Positions 46,165 to 58,560 of a DNA stretch of 64,000 nt are shown in pieces; within the stretch, counting starts at the first letter, position 1, and the number at the start of each line of letters is the position of its first letter. The notes under the pieces were generated by a model that saw only the letters and a program-made list of their open reading frames with translations, was not told the origin of the DNA and did not search any database. Source of the DNA: Haplodiscus bocki (Eukaryota); the NCBI GenBank assembly GCA_965655095.1, contig OZ296656.1:13330001-13394000 (forward strand), read 5' to 3'. The position numbers and the translations under genes are program-made.

Positions 46165-49100
46165 TCTTTATTATCTGTTGGAACGACCCACATGGGGGCT
46201 GGGAGTGCTCTATTCAGTGGGGCAGTGGGGTCTTCTCCAAGGTCGATTTCCGTGCGCCCAGCTAAATGCAGGGACCCTCGAAACCAAAATTTGTGCATTG
46301 GCGCGCATTAAGGTGCAGCTCAGTCTGGTGAACAGCGCGCGTTTGATGTCTGCCTTGGCCGATACCGTCTGCATTGCTACCCTCGACGAAAGGCTATCAA
46401 GGAAGACGCTTGCTTCGCTGCCCCAACCTCCGTATGTGGAGACGACAATAGGGATGCACTCCCAACCGAGCTCACGACATTTAGCGTCATTGTTTCTGTG
46501 TTTTCTGTCAGCTGCCTCCTCAGTGATTAGACCCGGGATGATCGCTCCTTCGATATTGGAATTGTTGAGCGGATTCACCACGGTAACATCTAGAGCGGCA
46601 TCTCTGCCAAGATTCCATGTCGGCAACAAAATGTCTGCCGGTCGTGTCTGATTTAGATAGCCTGACCCTGCCTCCAGTGTTGGGTTCAATTGGGCTCTGC
46701 GACAGTAATCTGCAATGCAATCACGTAGAGTGTTGTGCCGCCTGCATATGCCTGGACCTCTCTTGCAGGTCAGCGCGTGTTGCCCAAATTGGTCCAGTGT
46801 CTCGCTAGGACATGAGCCGCAGGTGGCTTTCTCTGGGAACAAGTTGAGGCCTAGTCTCCATTTGACCAGCATGTGGTACTCATTGGGCGAAAATGCAAGT
46901 CCTAATTTTTTCGATGGCTGAGCCAAGATCCAGTCGCCTGCATGTGGTTCGGCAAGGCTTGTTAGTCTGGCTTTTTCCACCAAGGAACCGCTTTCTATAA
47001 GACTTTCGAACTGATGATGGTCAATTCTCTCTGATAGGGGTTCTTGTCGGACCAGGTCTGATGCCTGATACGTCGCTTGATTGTCTCCGATTTTGTCATT
47101 GTAGACCTCTATAGCGTCATTGAGAAGGCGGAGGTCGGGTTCAGTACCCATTGCACTCGTGTGGGAGGATATGAAAGCCGCCGAGGAGTGCTCTTCAACG
47201 GAGCGAAGGCCTACACCTCCCAATCTGACTGGTAGCTGTGCCTGAGTCCAAGATCTTTGAGTGGTGTTTACGACTACGCTTTCCTCGTAGCAGCGTCTCA
47301 CCTTCTTGTCAAATTCTTTGAGAGCTGGACTCGCGGTTCGAGGCGGCACTGTTCTCGCTAAGTGCCCTAGTTTGCAAAACGAAGCACATGTGAGAAGTAG
47401 AGTGGCAGCAACCTGGGGGTTTTCTAATTGCGGTAGTCTCAATAGGAGCTTTTCTGCATCGTTTGCTTTCCTAAGAATGTAGTCTCTGCAGAAAGTGTCG
47501 TCACCGATAGGAGAACCTAAAATTTCCAGATTGGGCTCGTGATGCTTTCTCGAGATGTCGGCTGGAAACGAAGAAAGGTCGGATTTGCTGTACAGCTCGC
47601 ATTTGCTCAGCTTGACGTTGAGACCTGTGATTGGCGTCGCGTCATTCAAGATTCTCAGTAGCTTCGTTACGTCACTCTTAGTTCCACAGAAGACGCCATC
47701 GTCGAGGTACCAGCAGTGGAGGAGCAGCTGGCATTCTGCGTCAATGTCTTTGACCACAGAATGGAGACCCAATGCAAAGAACAGTGGGACTAGTGGATCT
47801 CCTTGTTGCACACCGTGTTGTGAGCTTAGGCTTCCTAATATGTGCCATAGCTTGGGGTGGTCACCGTAGCAAAATTTTGCCCATGCTAGAAGTTCTGGAA
47901 AGTGTTCTTTACACTAGTTCATGATCAGGTTTCTGTCTACCGTGTTGAAAGCGTTACTCATGTCAACTTTGAACACCACGAAGTCATTGTGGTTCCAGTG
48001 TTTTTCAATCGTTTGCCGCAGTCGATGAGTCACCTTCTCTGTCCCGCTTGGGCATGCCACACCAAACTGTAGGGGTGTAAAGAATGCAGCTGCTTTCGAC
48101 TTCAGAGTTATGCAGGCATATTTACTAGTTAGGCGGCGCAATATTTCGCCCGAGGCTATGGGTCTAATATCGTTACCAGTTTTGTTCAACGCTGTGAGTG
48201 ACGCGCCCGCAATGAATGGCGCCATTGACTGGGGTGCAGCTCCTCGTAACAAAATGTTCACTACGTGTCGGAGCTGCGTTGTCAGTGGGATTGGTACTGT
48301 GGCTTCTTGTGCTTCCAATATGTGTTGAACTCTCAGCCCTGAGGGACCACATGCTGTGTTCTTCGGGAAGCTGTGGATTGCATTAGCCATGTCAAAACTT
48401 GAGTCTAACTGAAGGGCTTCAGTGTCTTCCCTGATGGCCGTGGGTCTCGTTGCTTGTGGGTGTTTTGCTTTGAGCTGTTCCCATGTTTCCTTGTTATTGG
48501 GAGCAATACCTGACGAGCTTAGTATCCTGCACGCTTTGCCGTACTGGCCGTCCGCGGCTGCCGAAGTTGCTGCATCCAGTTGGGCCTGGCCGTCTTGTGC
48601 ATTCTTTGATTTCCGGTTGGTCATTTTATCCCCGGACGCTTTGGCATTGGCCCATAGGGTGGACCAATCTCCACGCTCCCACCGGTCACAGAAGCCTTCA
48701 ATGGAAGGAAGGGTCTTCTTTCGACCTGCCCGCTTGTTGGACGGTAGCACGCATTTTGGAAGCATTAACAGCTTTGTCCACGCTGTTTCGTCGTTTTCAG
48801 ATACTACCTGTGACAGGCAGTCGTAGAGGATTTTGCCAAATTTCTGCCTCGCGCCTTTGGGGATGAGTTTGAGTGTTGGTCTCCTTAGGGACATTACGTC
48901 CTTTGGGGTTGGAAGGGCTTCCTCGTTGTTTGAGGTTAAGCCGTCAGGCGGGCGGTCGACGCCTTGGAATGTGCATGATCGGGAATGCGCTTCTCGCTGA
49001 ACGCATGAGACCAATTTCCTACATTTGCAGATGTACCTCCTCTGCGTCGCGAGCCATTCCGAGCTGACTTCCCCTAGGAGTAGACTTTTGCTGTGCTTTT

Positions 49101-49590
49101 CCATGTGGTCTAGCTCGCGCGTGGGCGCAATTCGTGCGTCACAAGTGGGTATTGGGCATTTCAAACCCGCGCCTGTGGCTTGCGGAGCGGGGGGTTGCGT
49201 GGCTTGAGTGCTGCCAGATTCTTGACTACGGTCCTTGATGGTGAGGCCCGCCATGGATTGTGTCAAACTGGTTGAGACATCTGTGCCTGGACTGCACGAG
49301 GAGTATGACCATGGCAGAAGAGTACCCTTCCATTTTCTGCTGACTCCCCGCCTTGTCTTCCATGACACTTTCCACCCGTCTATTGCTAGAGAGCTTATTG
49401 GCACTGTGTCTCGCCGTCCGTTTTCCCATTCGACGGTCACTAATGTCTCTCCTCCTTCCCGTGTGCGATAAGCTTCGTTGGGGAGAATGTTTGCCATGTG
49501 GTTGGGGTGGTTGAGGAAACTGCGACTCCGAGGTTGTTAACCCCTTGAAGTCACAGGGATGGACGGGTACAATGGGGGCGACTAATCTAT
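46165..49590 (-). mobile_element. Near-intact CRE-clade RLE non-LTR retrotransposon; single ORF 46210-49497 (~1095 codons) with one in-frame TAG at 47914-47916
   Basis: Two zinc fingers (CPIPTC..HMEKH; CKC..H..C), RT (DIRPIASGEILRRL, DMSNAFN, QQGDPL, WYLDDG), CCHC (CGSC..HALTC) and RLE (RHNTLRD, RPADI, DVTV, K). ORFs 47914-49497 and 46210-47811 share a frame, and the intervening 34 codons are open. Confidence 0.9.
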
Positions 49591-49950
49591 CTTACTGAAT
49601 GAAATCTTGAGTACATGTATTGTATGACTCATTTGATACAACCATATCACAACAACAAATCACACAAAATACATCTAAGATTTTAGTTGAGCACTTAATG
49701 CCTGAACACACTGAAAAAAGTTCTGCAGACCTGAAACGAGAGCTGCAGGACGAAAAAGCCAACAAACCAACTCCTTTACCATTACAATCACATTATAATA
49801 TTTTTCTGACTGCCCATATATGATCACAGGTTCATTGTTTCATACTCACTAATATAGGCTTCAGTACATCATCATCATCATCGGATTCTTCTAACGCGCG
49901 CATCTGCTCAGAGATGAGCACTCCAGCGCGCAGGAAAGTTGCCAGAATTG

Positions 49951-52711
49951 TCAGCTGTCCAATTGGAGTTGGAAGAGATGTGATTTGAGCTTCGTTTTAA
50001 ACCCATCAAGTGAACCCGCCTCACGAACTTCCAAAGGTAGTCGGTTGTACAATCGAGGGCCAGCCAAAGCAAAAGCTCCACGAGTATTATCTAGGCAAAA
50101 TCTTTCGGCAGTAAGTAGTTTCAAAGATTGTGATCTGAGCCCCGATGAAGAGTACTTCAGTAATTCTGTCAGGTATTCTGGGGCTAATCCGTGTAAACAT
50201 TTCCACACGAGTAAACATACTTTGAAAGTAATTCGATACGAAACTTTAAGCCAATGGAGTTGATGAATAAATGGCGTAATGTGCAAATGCGTTGGCAGTC
50301 GGAAAATCAGTCTGGCACAACGATTCTGCAGTTTCTGAAGCTTGGTAATCTGATATTCAGGAAAAGCGGAAAGACAACCATTGAATAGATCGAGATGACA
50401 GGTTAATAAGAGAGTTAATCAAGGTTCGAGATGTATGAATAGAAAGATAGTTTCGTATTTGCCATAGTTCTCGGAGAGTTAAATTGCAGCGTTGAATAAC
50501 AGAGTCAATATGCTTAGATAGAAGAAGTTTGTCGTTGCTAAGAATACAGCCTAATGTTTTCACAGATCTACCATCAGGAGAAGAAGGGTTTATGACAAGA
50601 ATTTCAGTTTTATCAGCATTCAGATCGAGATGGAGACGTTTGAGAAATGTTTTGATCTCTTGAATGAGAAGGTTAATGTCACTAAGTTTGGATTCACAGT
50701 CATTAATGTCAATACAGAGATGAAGTTGGGTGTCGTCAGCGTAAAGATGATAAGGAATGTTCAGGCGGTCGAGATAGAAAGAAATAGAAATTGTATATAT
50801 AGTAAACAGACTTGGGCCCAGGGTAGAACCTTGTGGGACACCACACAACACAATGTGAATACGAGAGCGACAGTTGTTGATCTTAACACATTCTTTACGA
50901 TTGCACAAGTAAGACGAAAACCAGTTCAAAACATTTCCTCGTAGACCAAGTTGCTTCAGAGTTCTGATCAATAAGATGTGCGATACAGTATCAAAAGCAG
51001 CGGTGAGATCCAGTAATAATAAAATTGCAACTTTACGTTTATCCAAAACAAACAAAATATCATTGTGTATTCTGGTAATTGCTGTTTCAATAGAGTGATT
51101 TTTTCGGAAGCCAGATTGAAATTTCGGTAAGAGGTTGTTCACAGTCAGGTAATTTACAAGTTGAGCAGCGACGACTTTTTCAAACAGTTTCGAAATGAAA
51201 GAAAGGTGGGACATAGGACGATATTTGGACAAATCTTCAGGATCAGCATTAGGTTTTTTCAACAGAGGGACAACAGTTGCTTGTTTGAGGAGTGACGGGA
51301 AAACACCAGAAGACAGACTAGTATTAATAGTAAAAACAAGGAACGGAATGATTGCAGAGAGAAAAGTTCGATTGCTAAAATGTTTAGTTGGGATAACATC
51401 GGCGTCAGTTTCAGTTAAGTTCATAGAGCCAATAGTTTTTTCTAGATCATCCGCAGTAACAGGTTGGAAAGATTCGAAGACAGATGTAGCAGCAGGAAAT
51501 TCAATAAGTGTGTTGCGATCAGGAGGAAAAGAAGCAGTTATTGAAGAAATCTTACACTCGAAGAAATCAATGAAGCGGTTAGACAATTCTTTACCACATG
51601 AGAAAGATGGAAGCTTGTGATTTACTTGGCGGCGATGTAAGAGCGTATTCGAGGCGTCGAAGAGTTGTTTCGTTGTACTACAAGAAGATAGATCAGTATA
51701 ATAGAGACGATGTTTGCGTTGAAGAGCAGAGAGGTACAGTGTACGAGCAGAGCGGTAGGCGAAAAGAGATACGTCCGTGCGGTTCTTGAGAAATGCATGT
51801 TCAGCTTTACGACGAGATGTACGAAGTGACTTGAGTTCAGCATCAAACCAAGGAGCAGACAGTGTGCGAGATTTTACAACGCGACGAGGGCAATGAAGGT
51901 CAAGGTAGGTAGCAGCAGAGTCACTGAAGTCACGATATAAGGAAGACGCGTCATCAGACGCAGGAACATAATTGCTAATGAAACTACACCAGTTATCAAA
52001 GTTGAACGAACGCGTGGATCTAATGCATTTTAAGAAATATTTAGGGCTTTTGTCGACTAACAGAGGAGTAGTAAACGTAATAGGAAAGTGGTCTACAACA
52101 AAGTCACATTCAGGAAAAATAAGCACATTGTGAATTGTCATGTAATCTGGAGCAATAATGAGATCGAGAGTGTTACCAGCACAATGAGTAGGAGCATGAA
52201 CGAACTGAGACAAAGAATAATTGGTTAAAAGACTCAGAAAGTTAGAAGCAAATTTCGATGTAGAGTCATTGACATGAATATTGAAATCTCCAACTATGAT
52301 GAAACATTTACGCCATAATAACTCATCAAGAAATTTCTCAAACTCGGCGAGAAACTCGGCCTGATTAGGGCGCGGAGGACGGTAAACTGCAAATACAGTT
52401 AATGTAACAGTACGTAACTTAAGAGTTATAGAAGCAGATTCAAATGTTTCGAACATGAAAGTGTTTAGGGTAGACGAGAGGGTTGACTTAAACAAGAACC
52501 CAACACCGCCACCACGAGAACCTCTAGGAAAATTTGCAGAAGTATAATCGTTATGTAAGAAAAGATGTAGAGAATAGCCAGAAGAATCAATCCAAGTTTC
52601 AGTGATAGCACAGATGTCAACAGATAAATCAAATACCCAATCGTTGAGAAGAAGTTCTTTGTTATTCACAGAACAAGGATTAACAAGAGCAAGTTTCAGG
52701 GAAGATAGTTG
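49951..52711 (-). CDS. L2 ORF2 endonuclease-reverse transcriptase (no ATG; one 1-bp insertion near 50404)
   Basis: Open in frame from the codon after the ORF1 stop: QLSSLKLALVNPCSVNNK... Removing one base near 50404 joins it to HLDLFNGCL...QKLQNRCARLIF...HITPF (49951-50286). Confidence 0.85.
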
Positions 52712-53658
52712 TCAATTGGATATCGGTAAAAGTTTGAAAAGGTCTGGTGGAGGCTTTGTGTGATCGAGAAGCATATCAACATTTGCATTAGGGTTGTAGC
52801 ATAGCTTGAGATTCCGAACTTTGAGATGAGACTTATCGACGCCAAGACGATGCAGGTTGTAGCGAGCAGAGAGAAGGGCTTTTTCCAAGATTCGGTTTTC
52901 CGGAGTACAGTCTTCCTTGACAAAGTAGCTGGTATCCTTGAGATTCTTCGCCTTAGCTCGAGCAAGGTCAGTGTGCCAGGAGTGTTGGAAGGTAACCACA
53001 ATGGGGCGCGGCTTTGTGTGTGAAGCGTTGTATTTCCCTCGACGGTGGAAGTGCGCGATGTTGTAGGTTTTAGCCTCTAGCAGATCAAGAACATTGTCAA
53101 TCTTGTCTTTTTCAGCAGCATTACGAACTGCTTTTGAAGAGCCAGCGGTTTCAGGGACGCCAAGAATCAAGAGGTTGTGAGAGATGTCGTAGTTCAATGA
53201 ATGTTGTGCGGCAGAAGGTGTGGTGTTCTGGGAATTGAGTGTTTGTGAGCAATCTACCAAAGGACGGGGGGAGAGCCAGAGACTCCGCCATCCACGGGCT
53301 GAGGAGCAGTAGAAGAAAGAGAACAGTTTTCAACTTTATAATCAAGTTTCTGGATTGAGTCACTGATCGTTGAAAGGTTGTCACAGATATTACGCAGAGA
53401 ATGCTTGACATAAATAGATGAACGTAATTCAGCAACAGCAAGTTTCAGCAAATAAGAAAGGTCGCCTTTAACAGCAGTATTACAATATTTTTGTAACGAC
53501 TCATCTGTATAAGAAAGAAGTTGTTGAAGGGTGGGGCAGTAGTCCCTCTGGAAAGAGGTAACCTCCACGCGCTCCAGGCACTCCTCGACCGACGGTAGAC
53601 GAACACGAGTTGCGGGTTGTGGGCCAGATAGTGCATCATTATCCAACTCCAGCGACAT
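52712..53658 (-). CDS. L2 ORF1 (coiled coil + RRM-like), one -1 frameshift at the C6 run near 53266-53271
   Basis: NLLILGVPE...HRRGKY..KPRPIVVTF...FVKEDCT is typical of LINE ORF1. Adding one C to the homopolymer joins ORFs 53254-53658 and 52712-53260. Confidence 0.75.
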
Positions 53659-55127
53659 AGCATCGGAAACTATTTAATAAGTTTATCACAACAATTAGGC
53701 TAAGTACGGGCTAAGTACGGGCAACGAACGAACGAAACCTGAAATTCCATTAACATCATGAGTTCTAGCGTTCTACAAGTCATTTAGAGCAAAGGTCAAT
53801 TAAGAATCAACATCGGTCACTTGAAGAGCATGGGTCGGTTTGGAGCACTAAAAATCTAAGTATGGTCCATGGTCGCTTCCGACTACAAAGTTCGTTGCAC
53901 TTGACAAGAAAACAATCCCGAGCTGAAACCACACCCACTCACACAAAACAAAAAGCTACGCCGTAAATTTACACCGGAATGTTACGTCATGTGCACTACA
54001 ATGCCCACAACACAAGAAGTTGTTGGAATGCTCAAAAAGACGGGTGTACACGTCAGTTGCAATTATTCTAAAATCAGTGAGAATGAGACACGTAAAATCT
54101 CATTGAGAACAGATAATACAAATGTGACAATCAGGCGACAGCCATTTCCGCCATGTTCATCCAAAGTTCCGGCTGAGAGCCGACTATATTGAGTTGATTG
54201 AGATTGAGTCTGCCGCCAAACATCTCTAAAGCTCAATTAACCGGTGCAGTTATAATATTGTCCCAGAAGCTGCTTCATGATTCAAAAACAAGATTTCACA
54301 AACTCAACAAAGAGGCGCAATTGCAATCCGACACTTTCCGCCAGAGGGGAGCAAAAAAGACTGCTCGAACATACAACAAATCAATTTCACAAAAATCCAT
54401 GATTGATAAAAAAAATCTCGACGCCGGAAGATTCGAAGCCGATAGCTTTAGAGAATTATGGGTTTGAAAATCGACAAATTAAGAAAATTAATTAGACCTT
54501 TTCGCGTTTTCGGCCTATTATATTCCATTTGGGCCAACAAAAAAATTCATTATAGGAGTCACTTAAAAGTATAACGTCAATTCAGAACTTGATAGAAATC
54601 AAATCCGCAGTTTTTGAGGAGGATGAGTTGGAAAATGGAGATACCTCTATCCTAGAAGCACCTTTGCCGCTGTTGGTCAATTAAGATTCCAATTCGGATG
54701 TAGAATTTTCAAGATAAATAGAAACGAGTACTCCACCTCGAGCAAAAAGCTATCAATTGACACTTGATGCAACAATGAAACAGGTAGAGGTACAGGAAAA
54801 CCAGTCTATTTTAATGAATCTCATCAAGAACAAGAATTTACAGGCCAGTCTGGTCCGCAGGAGTTAACTCCACGGAGGACAAACAATGACTTTCAATTCA
54901 ACACGAAAAGAAAGTTTATAGAGAGCTTGATAGAAACCAACACGGTTAGTATCAGGCAAGACGAGGTTGAAAAACGTGAGGAGCTAATAAAAGAAAACAT
55001 TTCTGGCCTTTTGAACTATCAAGATTCCAATGCTAAAACGGGGTTGATTGTTATTCACACCAATAAACCACAAAAGGAAGAAACCTTCCATTTGCAACCT
55101 TGCCTAATTGTTGTGAACTTATTAAAT

Positions 55128-55641: not shown

Positions 55642-58560
55642 ATGATGAGCACATGGTCGTGTGGAGCTTGCAATAAATCAGTAACAGAGAGACAAGGGTC
55701 CATTCTATGCATTACCTGCGAATATTGGTTCCACAAAAAATGCACCAACCTGACAACCAAAGAAATCAAAAACCTTGAAAATCAAAACTGGACTTTTATT
55801 GAATGCTTAGAACGCCAATGTCCTCGCCTAGTGTACCCTAAGAGTCCTGGCCACATCTCGTCGAATGGACCAGGCAGTACAATAATCGAGGGTGGGGACA
55901 AAGATGACGGGGAACATGGAGACTCGCCGATGACATGCTGCTGGCACCTCACCATGTTCCATTGAAGACAGCAATCCCGACAGGTTCTGGACAAACCTTA
56001 GCTATTCATCCCACCAGAAACTGAACAAGATCTACGAGGAAATCGTACACTGGAAACCCATATTCTTCAACATCTTCAGAAAAAAAACTGGCGAAATCTT
56101 CCTGAAATGTCTGAAGACATTTCAACCCCTTGCAGAAAACACAAACCACCATGAAATGTCAATGAAGGCCGCAAAGGTACTCCCCCACCTAATTCCAGTT
56201 TGAACCACCGACCGACGTGACGGATCCGTTGATAAGTTTCTGCAAAAACGGCTACAACTCTGAAAAAATGGAGTTTCTGACAAATTTTCTGAAGAGAGCC
56301 ATTCACTACAGAAACGAATTAGAACGAAACGAAAACCACCTTCTGATGAGACGAAAGAATTCAACAGACAAATGAAGTCAAGAAAGGAAGCAAACGCCAT
56401 ACGCACACTCCAAAATGAGCAAAACGGTGGTGTCCTTGACCTACCAGAAAAAATCAACGGCGAAACCGTCTTGCAAATCCTCAAATCGAAATCCGTCGTC
56501 TCAACCGTACGATCCTGCCCCTTATCGTGGATGACTGGACAAAAACACTACCATACCACCCTTCAATATCCGACAGAACCGATGCACACGCCAAACGCAG
56601 GGCTACCTTTAAAACCAGTGGCGGCCACGGACCATTCGGAGTTGATGCCTTGAAATGGTGCTGGCATCTAACGGCTTTTGGAAGTCGCTCGGAATCCCTT
56701 TGCCGAACAGTAGCAAAAATAGCTGTAAGACTCCCGACTGAGGAACAAGATCCAACGAATGTGCAAGCTTACAACGCGTGTTGACTAAAACCTCTAGACA
56801 AGTGTCCCGGTGTTCGTCCAATCGGTGTTGGGAAGTACTTCGGCGGGTAATTGGTAGAACAATTGTATCCTGCATAGAGACAGATTTAAAACAACTCGTT
56901 GGAAACTAGCAGCTCTGCATGGAACAACGTTGTGGCATTGAACAGGCTATTCACTCACTGAGAGCACATTTTGTCGAAAATGAAGCTGTCCTTCTGATTG
57001 ATGCAACAAACGCTTTCAACCTCCTTAATCGCAAACTAGAGCTAAAAAACATAAAGACCATTTGCCCGGTTCTTTTTATTGCGGTAAAAAACTCATATTC
57101 ATCGCTATCGCCGCTTTATATGAACGGAACAACACTATGGTCAGAAGAAGATACCAGGCAAGGTGACCCGCTTGCAATGTGAATGTACGGAGTGGCAATC
57201 CTCCCCCTGATACAGAAAATCTCAAAGGTGAACGTAATCCGCAAATGGTACGCAGATGGAAATGCGTGTGGACGGATATCCGACCTATATGAAACGTTCA
57301 GGGCTCTGAAAAACCGAAGGCCCAAGATATGGATGCTTCGTCAACGCCCCCAAAACGCCAAGTGATAGTGGACAAAGAAAAAATGGACCTCACCCTGGAG
57401 ACTTTTGCGGATCAAACGTGCAAAGAACGCTCGGAACCAGAGTACTCGGCTGAGTCATAGGCACCCAAGAACCATGCGACGAAATCCTTGACAACAAAAG
57501 CACAGAGCAGAAAAAACTGCTATCAAAACTAGGAGACATCGCTAAAATGAAACCGGAAAAAGCGCATGCGTGCCTTACCAAAGGGGTGAAACACAAAGTG
57601 AACTTCTTTACCCGGACAACACCTTCCTCTTCAGTCTTTTAGAAACATTGGAAGCAATAATCAGAGAAAGCATCATTCCGGCGGCAACCTCAAGAAGAGA
57701 ACCCTTACTAAAAGACAGGGAAATATTCTCACTGCCACTCAAGTCAGGAGGACTAGGCATAGACTGCCCAGGAAACCATCACGACGACTACGAACTGTCA
57801 AAGAAGTTATCCGAGCCACTGGAAGACAAAGATCCTCTGACTGCAGAACTCTGGCAGAAGCGCAACCTCGATGATCTATTAAACGCGAGGAAGAAAATCG
57901 CTGAGAAAATTTCAAACATTAAAAGTGTCCTGAGCACTGAGCAGAGACATGCACTCGAAAGAGCATCGCAGAAAGGAGCATCGGCCTGGCTGAATGTACT
58001 CCCGCTGAAGCGATACGGATTTCAATTAAATAAATCTGAATTCCGGGACAATCTCAGCCTTATATATAAATGGAATCCAAAAAACGCCCCGTTCAACTGC
58101 TCATGCGGAGAGATTTTCAGTGTGACTCATGCCTTGGACTGCCCTAAAGGCGGCTACTCAATCTTCAACCCGCCAGCGACGAGCTGCCCCGAAACCATAC
58201 AAGACTTCTACAAATACCACGAAGAACTCAAAAAACTCAAGTATGAACAGAGGATTAGAGACGTCGAGAACAGCACTTTCAACACCCTCGTGTTTTCGTC
58301 AACTGAAGGCGCAGGTCCTTCGGCGGGTAAAATCATGAAACGACTGGCCCAGAAAATTTCCGAGAAAAAGGAAGAAAAATACTCCGATGTCATGTCATTC
58401 ATCCGGACGAAAATAGGTTTTGCACTATTGAAGAGCTCCTTTCTGTGTATCAGAGGATGCAGAGCCCTTAAATCGACAAACACCATAGAAAACGCAAACT
58501 TCTGCATTCTGGCCGAAAGTCAAATCGACTAAAGCTCAATAAGTTGCTACAACACATTTT
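55642..58560 (+). mobile_element. Degenerate CRE-like RLE retrotransposon with N-terminal PHD finger
   Basis: PHD CGAC..CITC..FHKKC..W; YEEIVHWKP; GVRPIGVG; DATNAFNLLNR; QGDPLAM; WYADG; HALDCPKGG; YEQRI..VE..TF. The RLE core appears partly deleted. Confidence 0.82.

Follow-up and report, generated by a model that had tools for sequence, protein, structure and literature searches.

The window analyzed here is a 64,000-nucleotide stretch of Haplodiscus bocki (assembly GCA_965655095.1, contig OZ296656.1, positions 13,330,001 to 13,394,000). Its minus strand carries a 3.84-kb non-LTR retrotransposon (LINE) with two genes in one reading frame, separated only by a TGA stop codon (Table 1). At the junction the sequence reads CCG ATA TCC AAT TGA CAA CTA TCT TCC CTG AAA CTT GCT CTT GTT AAT CCT TGT TCT, and after the stop the frame continues with QLSSLKLALVNPCSV...ICAITETW. 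Two separate open reading frames, 52712..53260(-) and 50357..52669(-), share this frame. The first in-frame ATG follows only at codon 86, i.e., after the catalytic Asn (codon 11) and Glu (codon 38) of the endonuclease. The initial annotation had described this arrangement, with ORF1 ending in a TGA, CAA CTA behind it and the first ORF2 ATG about 85 codons downstream, and we could confirm it.

Table 1. Features of the LINE copy in the window (all on the minus strand)
Position	Feature	Remarks
49867..53701	Full-length but defective APE+RT LINE copy	Ends shared by nine full-length copies at other loci with unrelated flanks
52715..53658	ORF1, L1-ORF1p-like protein	315 codons in most copies, from the ATG at 53658; intact in copy L046 (314 aa)
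53266-53272	1-bp loss in a poly-C run (near 53272)	Breaks ORF1 in this copy
52712..52714	ORF1 stop codon TGA	In frame with ORF2; proposed readthrough site
52706..52711	CAA CTA	Fits CAR-YYA, the type I (tobamovirus-type) 3' readthrough context
49951..52711	ORF2 frame	920 codons, open in copy L044; ends at TGA 49953-49951 in the state shared by most copies
52037..52699	APE endonuclease domain	PF03372 (Exo_endo_phos) 6e-14, PF14529 2e-10; first strand, LKLALVN, starts 5 codons after the stop
52681-52679	Catalytic Asn	Codon 11
52600-52598	Catalytic Glu	Codon 38
52454..52456	First ATG in the ORF2 frame	Codon 86; too far downstream to give a complete endonuclease
50543..51256	Reverse transcriptase domain	PF00078 (RVT_1) 3.2e-33, residues 486-723
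50404	1-bp insertion	Shifts the ORF2 frame in this copy; reading ends at the stop 50357-50359
49896..49931	3'-UTR hairpin, GCGCGC...UGCUCA-UCUC-UGAGCA...GCGCGC	In the MFE and centroid folds, conserved in all copies; z-score for the whole 94 nt not significant (-0.37)
49867..49882	(GATG/ATG)n microsatellite 3' tail	Length variable among copies

A small LINE family with an L1-ORF1p-like ORF1

The family comprises about 15 copies in the genome that are 92-99% identical. Besides the nine full-length copies, several truncated or rearranged ones share the common ends and have different flanks. The copy in the window and all other copies examined carry frameshifts or nonsense mutations outside the ORF1-ORF2 junction, and the two youngest copies share an ORF1 frameshift. 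The last insertions may hence have been made in trans.

ORF1 encodes a protein of the L1 ORF1p type. A profile of the family hit human L1 ORF1p (2ykp/2yko, E 1e-6) as well as 2ldy and 2w7a, whereas Pfam Transposase_22 itself was not reached. The AF2 model (pLDDT 76) has a long helix, predicted as coiled coil, at residues 63-111, an RRM-type α/β domain with pLDDT above 90 at residues 158-290 and a disordered C-terminal tail. The Foldseek top 12 for this model were all human L1 ORF1p.

The initial annotation had labeled the element as L2, and we keep this label as provisional only. The best hits outside the genome are 35–37% identical, unnamed or generically named teleost and metagenome proteins. 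The 3' stem-loop followed by short tandem repeats is of the stringent type found in CR1/L2 elements, but this feature is shared by several clades and does not single out L2. Close relatives of the family were not found: the next APE domain in the genome is only about 36% identical, and a word-based search with ORF1 returned only the same species, where two hits (L056 and L057) were the same insertions as the copies L051 and L045 in another assembly. A degenerate pattern search for G..K..LKIRNLKLY in JGI metagenomes gave two chance hits only.

Conservation of the in-frame UGA and its 3' context

We first asked whether the stop codon might be a mutation of this copy, one of three outcomes named beforehand as refuting a readthrough signal, none of which occurred. 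All 12 copies examined that span the junction keep the TGA, including the oldest at about 93% identity, and 11 of them keep CAACTA; copy L055 has CAACGA. There is no ATG between the stop and the APE catalytic residues, and contigs from sequencing reads showed neither a variant at the stop nor a joint across it. However, none of the read sets is recorded as RNA; four runs with over half of the sampled words have no library type on record and two coral metagenome runs look like DNA and do not cover the junction. From the base composition of the element, the chance of a CAR-YYA hexamer is 0.0023, and 1 of 918 in-frame hexamers in ORF2 fits it.

On the branch separating the youngest pair of copies from the older ones, ORF2 changes were 15 nonsynonymous to 13 synonymous (dN/dS about 0.37, binomial p 0.009), in a codon comparison that used column-wise majority states for counting (36 changed sites). 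ORF2 was therefore under constraint in a lineage that carried the TGA.

ORF1 has 436 remote homologues. From these we chose six, from six assemblies and 26–36% identical, by rank and by the length of the available contig only, without knowledge of their junctions. All six have a TGA stop with ORF2 in frame 0; the next codon is CTA in five (L061, L062, L065, L067 and L070) and CTG in one. Three of the six also lack any ATG before the APE domain, while L065, L067 and L068 have an in-frame ATG between the stop and APE, so that independent initiation is possible there. None of the 150 best ORF1 homologues (longest 434 aa) runs into APE/RT, and they all end at about this point; none of 120 ORF2 homologues carries the ORF1 domain, and N-terminal extensions of long ORF2 homologues were not ORF1-like. 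A sense codon at the stop was hence not seen in these sets. In contrast, relatives found at the level of ORF2 (P0003, P0017, P0012) have other arrangements with a different or missing ORF1 and do not have this junction. APE homology starts within 1-5 codons after the stop.

These data contradict the view that the TGA is an inactivating nonsense mutation in a former single-ORF element whose few copies were made in trans or are simply dead. The small family size, the defects in every copy and the ORF1 frameshift shared by the youngest pair would fit it, but it is very unlikely given the family-wide TGA, the TGA at the same position in six distant relatives and the purifying selection on ORF2. 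Moreover, with the nearest other LINE only about 36% identical in APE, no obvious helper exists.

We then counted junction patterns 96-126 nt upstream of TETW in the genome itself, each against a reversed-pattern control. TGACTA gave 562 matches versus 44 and TGACAA 154 versus 29. In contrast, TAACTA (44 versus 65), TAGCTA (21 versus 16), TGATTA (45 versus 26) and TGACGG (19 versus 29) stayed at background. Of the first 100 TGACTA hits, 86 were in frame, compared with 33 expected. At least 20 different sequences read TGA CTA ... [LIV][LIV]N-x-[RQ]-[SG]. They are candidate junctions identified by pattern only, without evidence on an upstream ORF1.

Proposed readthrough and alternative routes to ORF2

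We propose, with a probability of about 0.72, that ORF2 is expressed by programmed stop codon readthrough. In this view, most ribosomes stop at the UGA and release ORF1p, a coiled-coil RNA-binding protein, whereas a small fraction would decode the UGA with a near-cognate tRNA, helped by CAA-CUA in this family and by CUA or CUAG in most relatives. These ribosomes would continue into the endonuclease/reverse transcriptase and make an ORF1p-ORF2p fusion at a fixed low ratio, as Gag-Pol is made. The sequence data establish the anatomy, the family-wide TGA, the conservation of stop identity, frame and +4 C across distant relatives and the genome-wide specificity for two leaky contexts; that readthrough actually occurs, its rate and the fusion being the active enzyme are inferred. 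With no spacer between the ORFs, the relative frame cannot drift without breaking an ORF, so frame conservation alone is weaker evidence than it looks, and the conservation of UGA and of the C-starting context carries more weight. The initial annotation had inferred an ORF1-ORF2 fusion at a fixed low ratio from stop-CAR-YYA, and our comparison supports this interpretation, except that the signal conserved across the clade is UGA-CUA(G) rather than CAR-YYA.

Both contexts have been validated experimentally in animal cells. UGA-CUA alone gave 1.5% readthrough, and CARYYA after UGA gave about 15% in HEK-293T cells in an OPRL1 context (PMC4132726). We found no significant RNA structure at or after the stop (z-scores -1.25 for the downstream 130 nt and +0.76 across the stop), which fits a context-only signal.

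Termination followed by AUG-independent reinitiation or non-AUG initiation is less likely but not excluded. Ribosomes would finish ORF1 at the UGA, the 40S subunit would stay on the RNA and restart within the next few codons, for example at CUG (codon 5), giving a free ORF2p. This is the mechanism that reviews give for LINE ORF2 (PMC5972666; PMC3708506; PMC3894237), and human L1 shows that a LINE ORF2 can be translated without an AUG by an unconventional route (Alisch 2006, as cited in PMC5972666). The CUG sits 4 codons after the stop, just before the first APE strand. Moreover, other L2-like relatives with ORF1 in a different frame also lack an AUG before APE (L060), so some AUG-independent route must exist in this wider group. 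However, reinitiation does not predict why the stop is always UGA (7 of 7 lineages), why the next bases are CUA(G) or CAA-YYA but not UUA or CGG, or why ORF2 is always in frame 0. At the junction there is no overlapping or adjacent stop/start such as UAAUG or AUGA, and no UGGGA-type motif occurs in the 90 nt upstream of the stop.

Selenocysteine recoding, or removal of the stop by splicing or editing, is very unlikely. UGA is the Sec codon, and Penelope-like elements with in-frame UGA are reportedly discussed in the literature (PMC8557442). However, an Rfam scan of the whole element at E<=1 found no SECIS or any other family apart from a weak snoRNA-like chance hit, and the 3' UTR is only about 85 nt. 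No GT...AG pair could remove the stop without also removing the catalytic Asn.

A broader reading, which we consider somewhat more likely than not, is that a large and old group of metazoan LINEs with an L1-ORF1p-like ORF1 (often with an N-terminal PHD finger) joined to APE+RT has no separate ORF2 start at all. It would express its enzyme only as the fusion, through UGA-CUA(G) and UGA-CAR-YYA, and non-LTR retrotransposons would have arrived independently at the retroviral Gag/Gag-Pol solution. The fusion would tether the enzyme to the ORF1p trimer on its own RNA, which would explain cis-preference.

How LINEs translate ORF2 from a bicistronic RNA is an open question, for which the above reviews list reinitiation, an unconventional AUG-independent route and 2A skipping, but not readthrough. 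A literature search found no description of readthrough in metazoan LINEs. A conserved in-frame UGA in two validated leaky contexts, seen in dozens of families, most of them from pattern matches, and in unrelated assemblies, gives a simple and testable answer. If true, the ORF1p:ORF2p ratio would be set by a mechanism shared with retroviruses and alphaviruses, and the fusion would be the active enzyme. Annotators could then join ORF1 and ORF2 across TGA-CTA or TGA-CAR-YYA, and a large natural set of readthrough sites in non-bilaterian animals would be at hand.

Comparison with known recoding systems

The gammaretrovirus MoMLV likewise has an upstream structural/RNA-binding gene and a downstream polymerase in one frame with a single stop between them, which gives a low fixed ratio of fusion to short product. 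MoMLV, however, uses UAG-G plus a downstream pseudoknot (type III; PMC13517186), whereas here the stop is UGA with a short 3' context and no detectable structure. The non-LTR element has no protease, so the fusion would probably stay uncleaved.

Among LINEs, silkworm SART1 also couples ORF2 translation to the end of ORF1 without a spacer, but it has an overlapping AUG (UAAUG) and needs downstream RNA structure (PMC5972666), neither of which is present here. Human L1 has an ORF1p of the same structural type and an ORF2 that does not depend on its own AUG, but its 63-nt spacer contains stops and there is no frame requirement; here the spacer is absent and frame, stop and context are conserved. 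The only explicit precedent that we found for a LINE is Paramecium LINE 'Group 3' (Guerin et al. 2017, PMC5405496), a one-sentence inference in a ciliate without context analysis, where the LINE clade and the ORF1 type (zinc finger) differ. UGA is the only stop codon in Paramecium. Arabidopsis ATLN LINEs are reported to have an in-frame amber codon between the ORFs (Noma et al. 2000, DNA Res).

The type I signal of tobamoviruses, stop-CAR-YYA, is fitted exactly by UGA-CAA-CUA in this family and by UGA-CAA-CCA in a second family of the genome. The classic cases are plant viruses with UAG, and most relatives of our element have CUA directly after the UGA instead. They thus match the type II signal UGA-CUA(G) of alphaviruses and of vertebrate OPRL1, OPRK1, AQP4 and MAPK10, which the family in the window does not, as a CAA codon sits between its UGA and CUA. 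The cellular type II cases add short C-terminal extensions, whereas here a 920-residue enzyme would be added. Type II contexts occur in five of the six relatives and in at least 20 families of this genome, many of them as UGA-CUAG, while UGA-CGG is not used. Relative L065 has UGA CUA ACC, the same nine bases as Sindbis virus (PMC13517186).

A TGA codon in frame between ORF1 and ORF2

We read the minus strand across the junction and found CCG ATA TCC AAT TGA CAA CTA TCT TCC CTG AAA CTT GCT CTT GTT AAT CCT TGT TCT, with the ORFs on either side of the stop in one frame. The observation of the initial annotation, i.e., an ORF1 stop followed in frame by CAA CTA and the APE domain, therefore held. 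According to Pfam, the downstream frame contains an APE endonuclease and a reverse transcriptase. The first APE strand (LKLALVN) begins 5 codons after the stop, the catalytic Asn is codon 11 and the Glu of ITETW is codon 38, whereas the first in-frame ATG is codon 86. The hexamer CAACTA fits CAR-YYA. From the base composition of the element this has a chance of 0.0023, and only 1 of 918 in-frame hexamers in ORF2 fits it.

The same 3.84 kb recurs with shared ends and unrelated flanks at about 15 places in the 1.5-Gb genome, at 92–99% identity, and ends in a GC-rich hairpin and a (GATG/ATG)n tail. Among the named sequencing runs, only coral and coral-reef metagenomes contained parts of the element. 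No copy is intact. The window copy has a 1-bp loss in a poly-C run that breaks ORF1 and a 1-bp insertion that breaks ORF2, copy L046 keeps ORF1 whole (314 aa) and copy L044 keeps a 920-codon ORF2. The copies form a near-star tree, plus one young pair, i.e., the window copy and L044, which are 99.3% identical. The ORF1 poly-C run varies in length: the window copy (−1) and L044 (+2) share the same net frameshift and the same T>C and delta-G changes, so their common source already had a broken ORF1, and the last insertions may have used proteins supplied in trans. A third copy, L049, has an independent −1 at this site.

We next asked whether the TGA is a nonsense mutation of a dead family. This is not the case. 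All 12 copies that span the junction, 11 in the genome and one more in a second assembly of the same species, read AAT TGA (ATT TGA in copy L008). Eleven of them read CAA CTA next, and copy L055 has CAA CGA. Moreover, on the branch that separates the young pair from the older copies we found 28 ORF2 changes, 15 nonsynonymous and 13 synonymous, with synonymous sites making up 24% of the total. This gives dN/dS of about 0.37 (binomial p = 0.009). We hence conclude that ORF2 was under purifying selection in a lineage that carried the stop at both ends of the branch, and we consider the nonsense mutation very unlikely.

Coordinates of the element, its junction and further features
Feature	Position	Strand
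Full element	window 53701-49867	minus
ORF1 stop codon TGA	window 52714-52712	minus
Poly-C run in ORF1	window 53266-53272	
5' end segment of the element (TAATTGTTGTGATAAACTTATTAAATAG)	window 53662-53701	
Two long ORFs directly 3' of the LINE	window 46210-49497	minus
PHD-finger ORF and following broken ORFs	window 55642-58532	plus
Second family with a CAR-YYA context, example in this genome (G000)	G000:C1:67486236-67486376	
APE+RT family with an offset frame (loci L029-L043), example	G000:C1:163876473-163876907	
Tandem TGACTAG...TETW pattern matches	G000:C2:38233041-38238362	
Two LINE copies (L065 and L066) on one contig	ena:ERZ26695794 ctg470862	

ORF1 homologues and comparison of junctions

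Pfam found nothing in ORF1. An exhaustive HMMER search, however, found 436 remote homologues, most of them 200–430 aa, and a profile of 40 of them hit human and mouse L1 ORF1p structures. An AlphaFold model showed a long helix, a disordered linker, a confident RRM-type domain and a disordered C-terminal tail, and its 12 best Foldseek matches are all human L1 ORF1p. Many relatives also carry an N-terminal PHD finger. None of the 150 best ORF1 homologues continues into APE/RT and none of 120 ORF2 homologues carries the ORF1 domain, i.e., among these sequences the two genes are never fused by a sense codon.

To compare junctions, we retrieved DNA for six of the best remote ORF1 homologues, chosen by rank and by the length of the contig carrying them before their junctions had been seen. 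They are 26–36% identical to this ORF1 and come from six assemblies. All six have a TGA stop with ORF2 in frame 0. This is in contrast to relatives found through ORF2 alone (P0003, P0017 and P0012; 35–37% identical), which have a different or missing ORF1 and do not share this junction.

Junctions of six remote ORF1 homologues (one locus or pair of loci per line)
Locus	Junction	Remark
L062	TGA CTA ACT	no ATG before APE
L061	TGA CTA TCT	no ATG before APE; an earlier TGA in this copy aligns with a Lys of the conserved KIRNLKL motif and is a copy-level nonsense mutation
L065/L066	TGA CTA ACC	in-frame ATG between the stop and APE
L067	TGA CTA GCA	in-frame ATG between the stop and APE
L068/L069	TGA CTG ACA	in-frame ATG between the stop and APE
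L070	TGA CTA AAT	no ATG before APE

L065 and L066 are two near-identical copies of one LINE, which lie about 9.6 kb apart on one low-coverage contig (22.7 kb, circular-flagged, 1x) and differ by a frameshift in APE.

To look for similar junctions in the genome of the element, we counted patterns of a stop plus the next codon lying 96–126 nt upstream of ACN GAR ACN TGG (TETW), each compared with the reversed pattern as control.

Matches to stop-plus-codon patterns upstream of TETW in the genome
Pattern	Matches	Control
TGACTA	562	44
TGACAA	154	29
TAACTA	44	65
TAGCTA	21	16
TGATTA	45	26
TGACGG	19	29

Of the first 100 TGACTA matches, 86 have a length divisible by three. The match starts show at least 20 different sequences that read TGA CTA and then the APE first strand and catalytic Asn, many of them with TGA-CTAG. 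The TGACAA set consists of the family studied here plus a second, abundant family, to which about half of the first 100 matches belong. It reads TGA CAA CCA ACT CTC TGC AAA TTA TCA TTG AAA CTA TTT TAC CTA AAT TCT CAA GGC, continuing in frame with APE to LKLFYLNSQG (match length 141), which is again CAR-YYA. The few LINE hits in the control sets are single mutated copies of TGA-CTA families. The matches are putative ORF1–ORF2 junctions. Moreover, four TGACTAG...TETW matches are spaced exactly 1728 bp apart; this is a tandem repeat and not obviously a LINE junction.

Stop-codon readthrough as the proposed mechanism

UGA followed by C is the leakiest stop context. UGA-CUAG drives efficient readthrough in four vertebrate genes, UGA-CUA alone gives 1.5%, and CARYYA after UGA gives about 15% in an OPRL1 context (PMC4132726). 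Alphaviruses use UGA-CUA (Sindbis: UGA CUA ACC) and tobamoviruses use UAG-CAA-UUA (PMC13517186). LINE families here keep exactly these two contexts, only with UGA, and in frame, as would be predicted by programmed readthrough but not by reinitiation. With a zero-length spacer, however, the frame cannot change without breaking an ORF, so frame conservation is partly structural, and the identity of the stop and its context is the stronger argument. We found no significant RNA structure at the junction and no overlapping AUG. AUG-independent reinitiation remains possible but unlikely. Recoding to selenocysteine or splicing is very unlikely, as neither a SECIS nor another Rfam element was found and no splice could remove the stop without destroying the active site.

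We therefore propose programmed readthrough as the mechanism, with a probability of about 0.72. The arrangement of the ORFs, the conserved TGA and its contexts are read directly from the sequences, whereas the occurrence of readthrough is inferred from them. The interpretation of the initial annotation, i.e., that the family makes an ORF1–ORF2 fusion by readthrough, is supported in this sense; its assignment of the element to L2 is provisional.

Reviews of LINE protein synthesis list reinitiation, the L1 route and 2A skipping, with no mention of readthrough. The only precedent we found is one sentence on Paramecium LINEs (PMC5405496). Arabidopsis ATLN elements have reportedly been described with an in-frame amber codon between the ORFs. 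The recoding mechanism itself is known, but in this class of elements it is not the accepted explanation. The family studied here is one member, with the rarer type I context.

Neighbouring and other retroelements

In contigs built from sequencing reads, the first ~35–40 nt of the element reach depths of 119,056 (X1) and 24,248 (X2), against tens to about 1,500 elsewhere, and have many unrelated flanks. This short AT-rich segment is either shared with something very abundant or matches loosely at 80% likeness.

The two long ORFs 3' of the LINE encode 533 and 527 aa. The first has a weak RVT_1 match (6.7e-6, below the Pfam cut-off), and this is probably another retroelement abutting the insertion. 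On the other strand, a PHD-finger ORF (107 aa, PF00628 1.5e-5) is followed by broken ORFs that appear RT-like by eye only, and this looks like a further degraded retroelement.

Loci L029-L043 represent a different, abundant APE+RT family. In 13 of 15 copies, the frame holding the APE N-terminal Asn (LFLNNIRSLKK) is offset from the rest of APE within or just before an A-run, with an in-frame TAG in 11 copies and TAA in 2. Two copies read straight through from an ATG (MFGNLKHCF). This is either a subfamily-wide 1-nt indel or a slippage-prone site.
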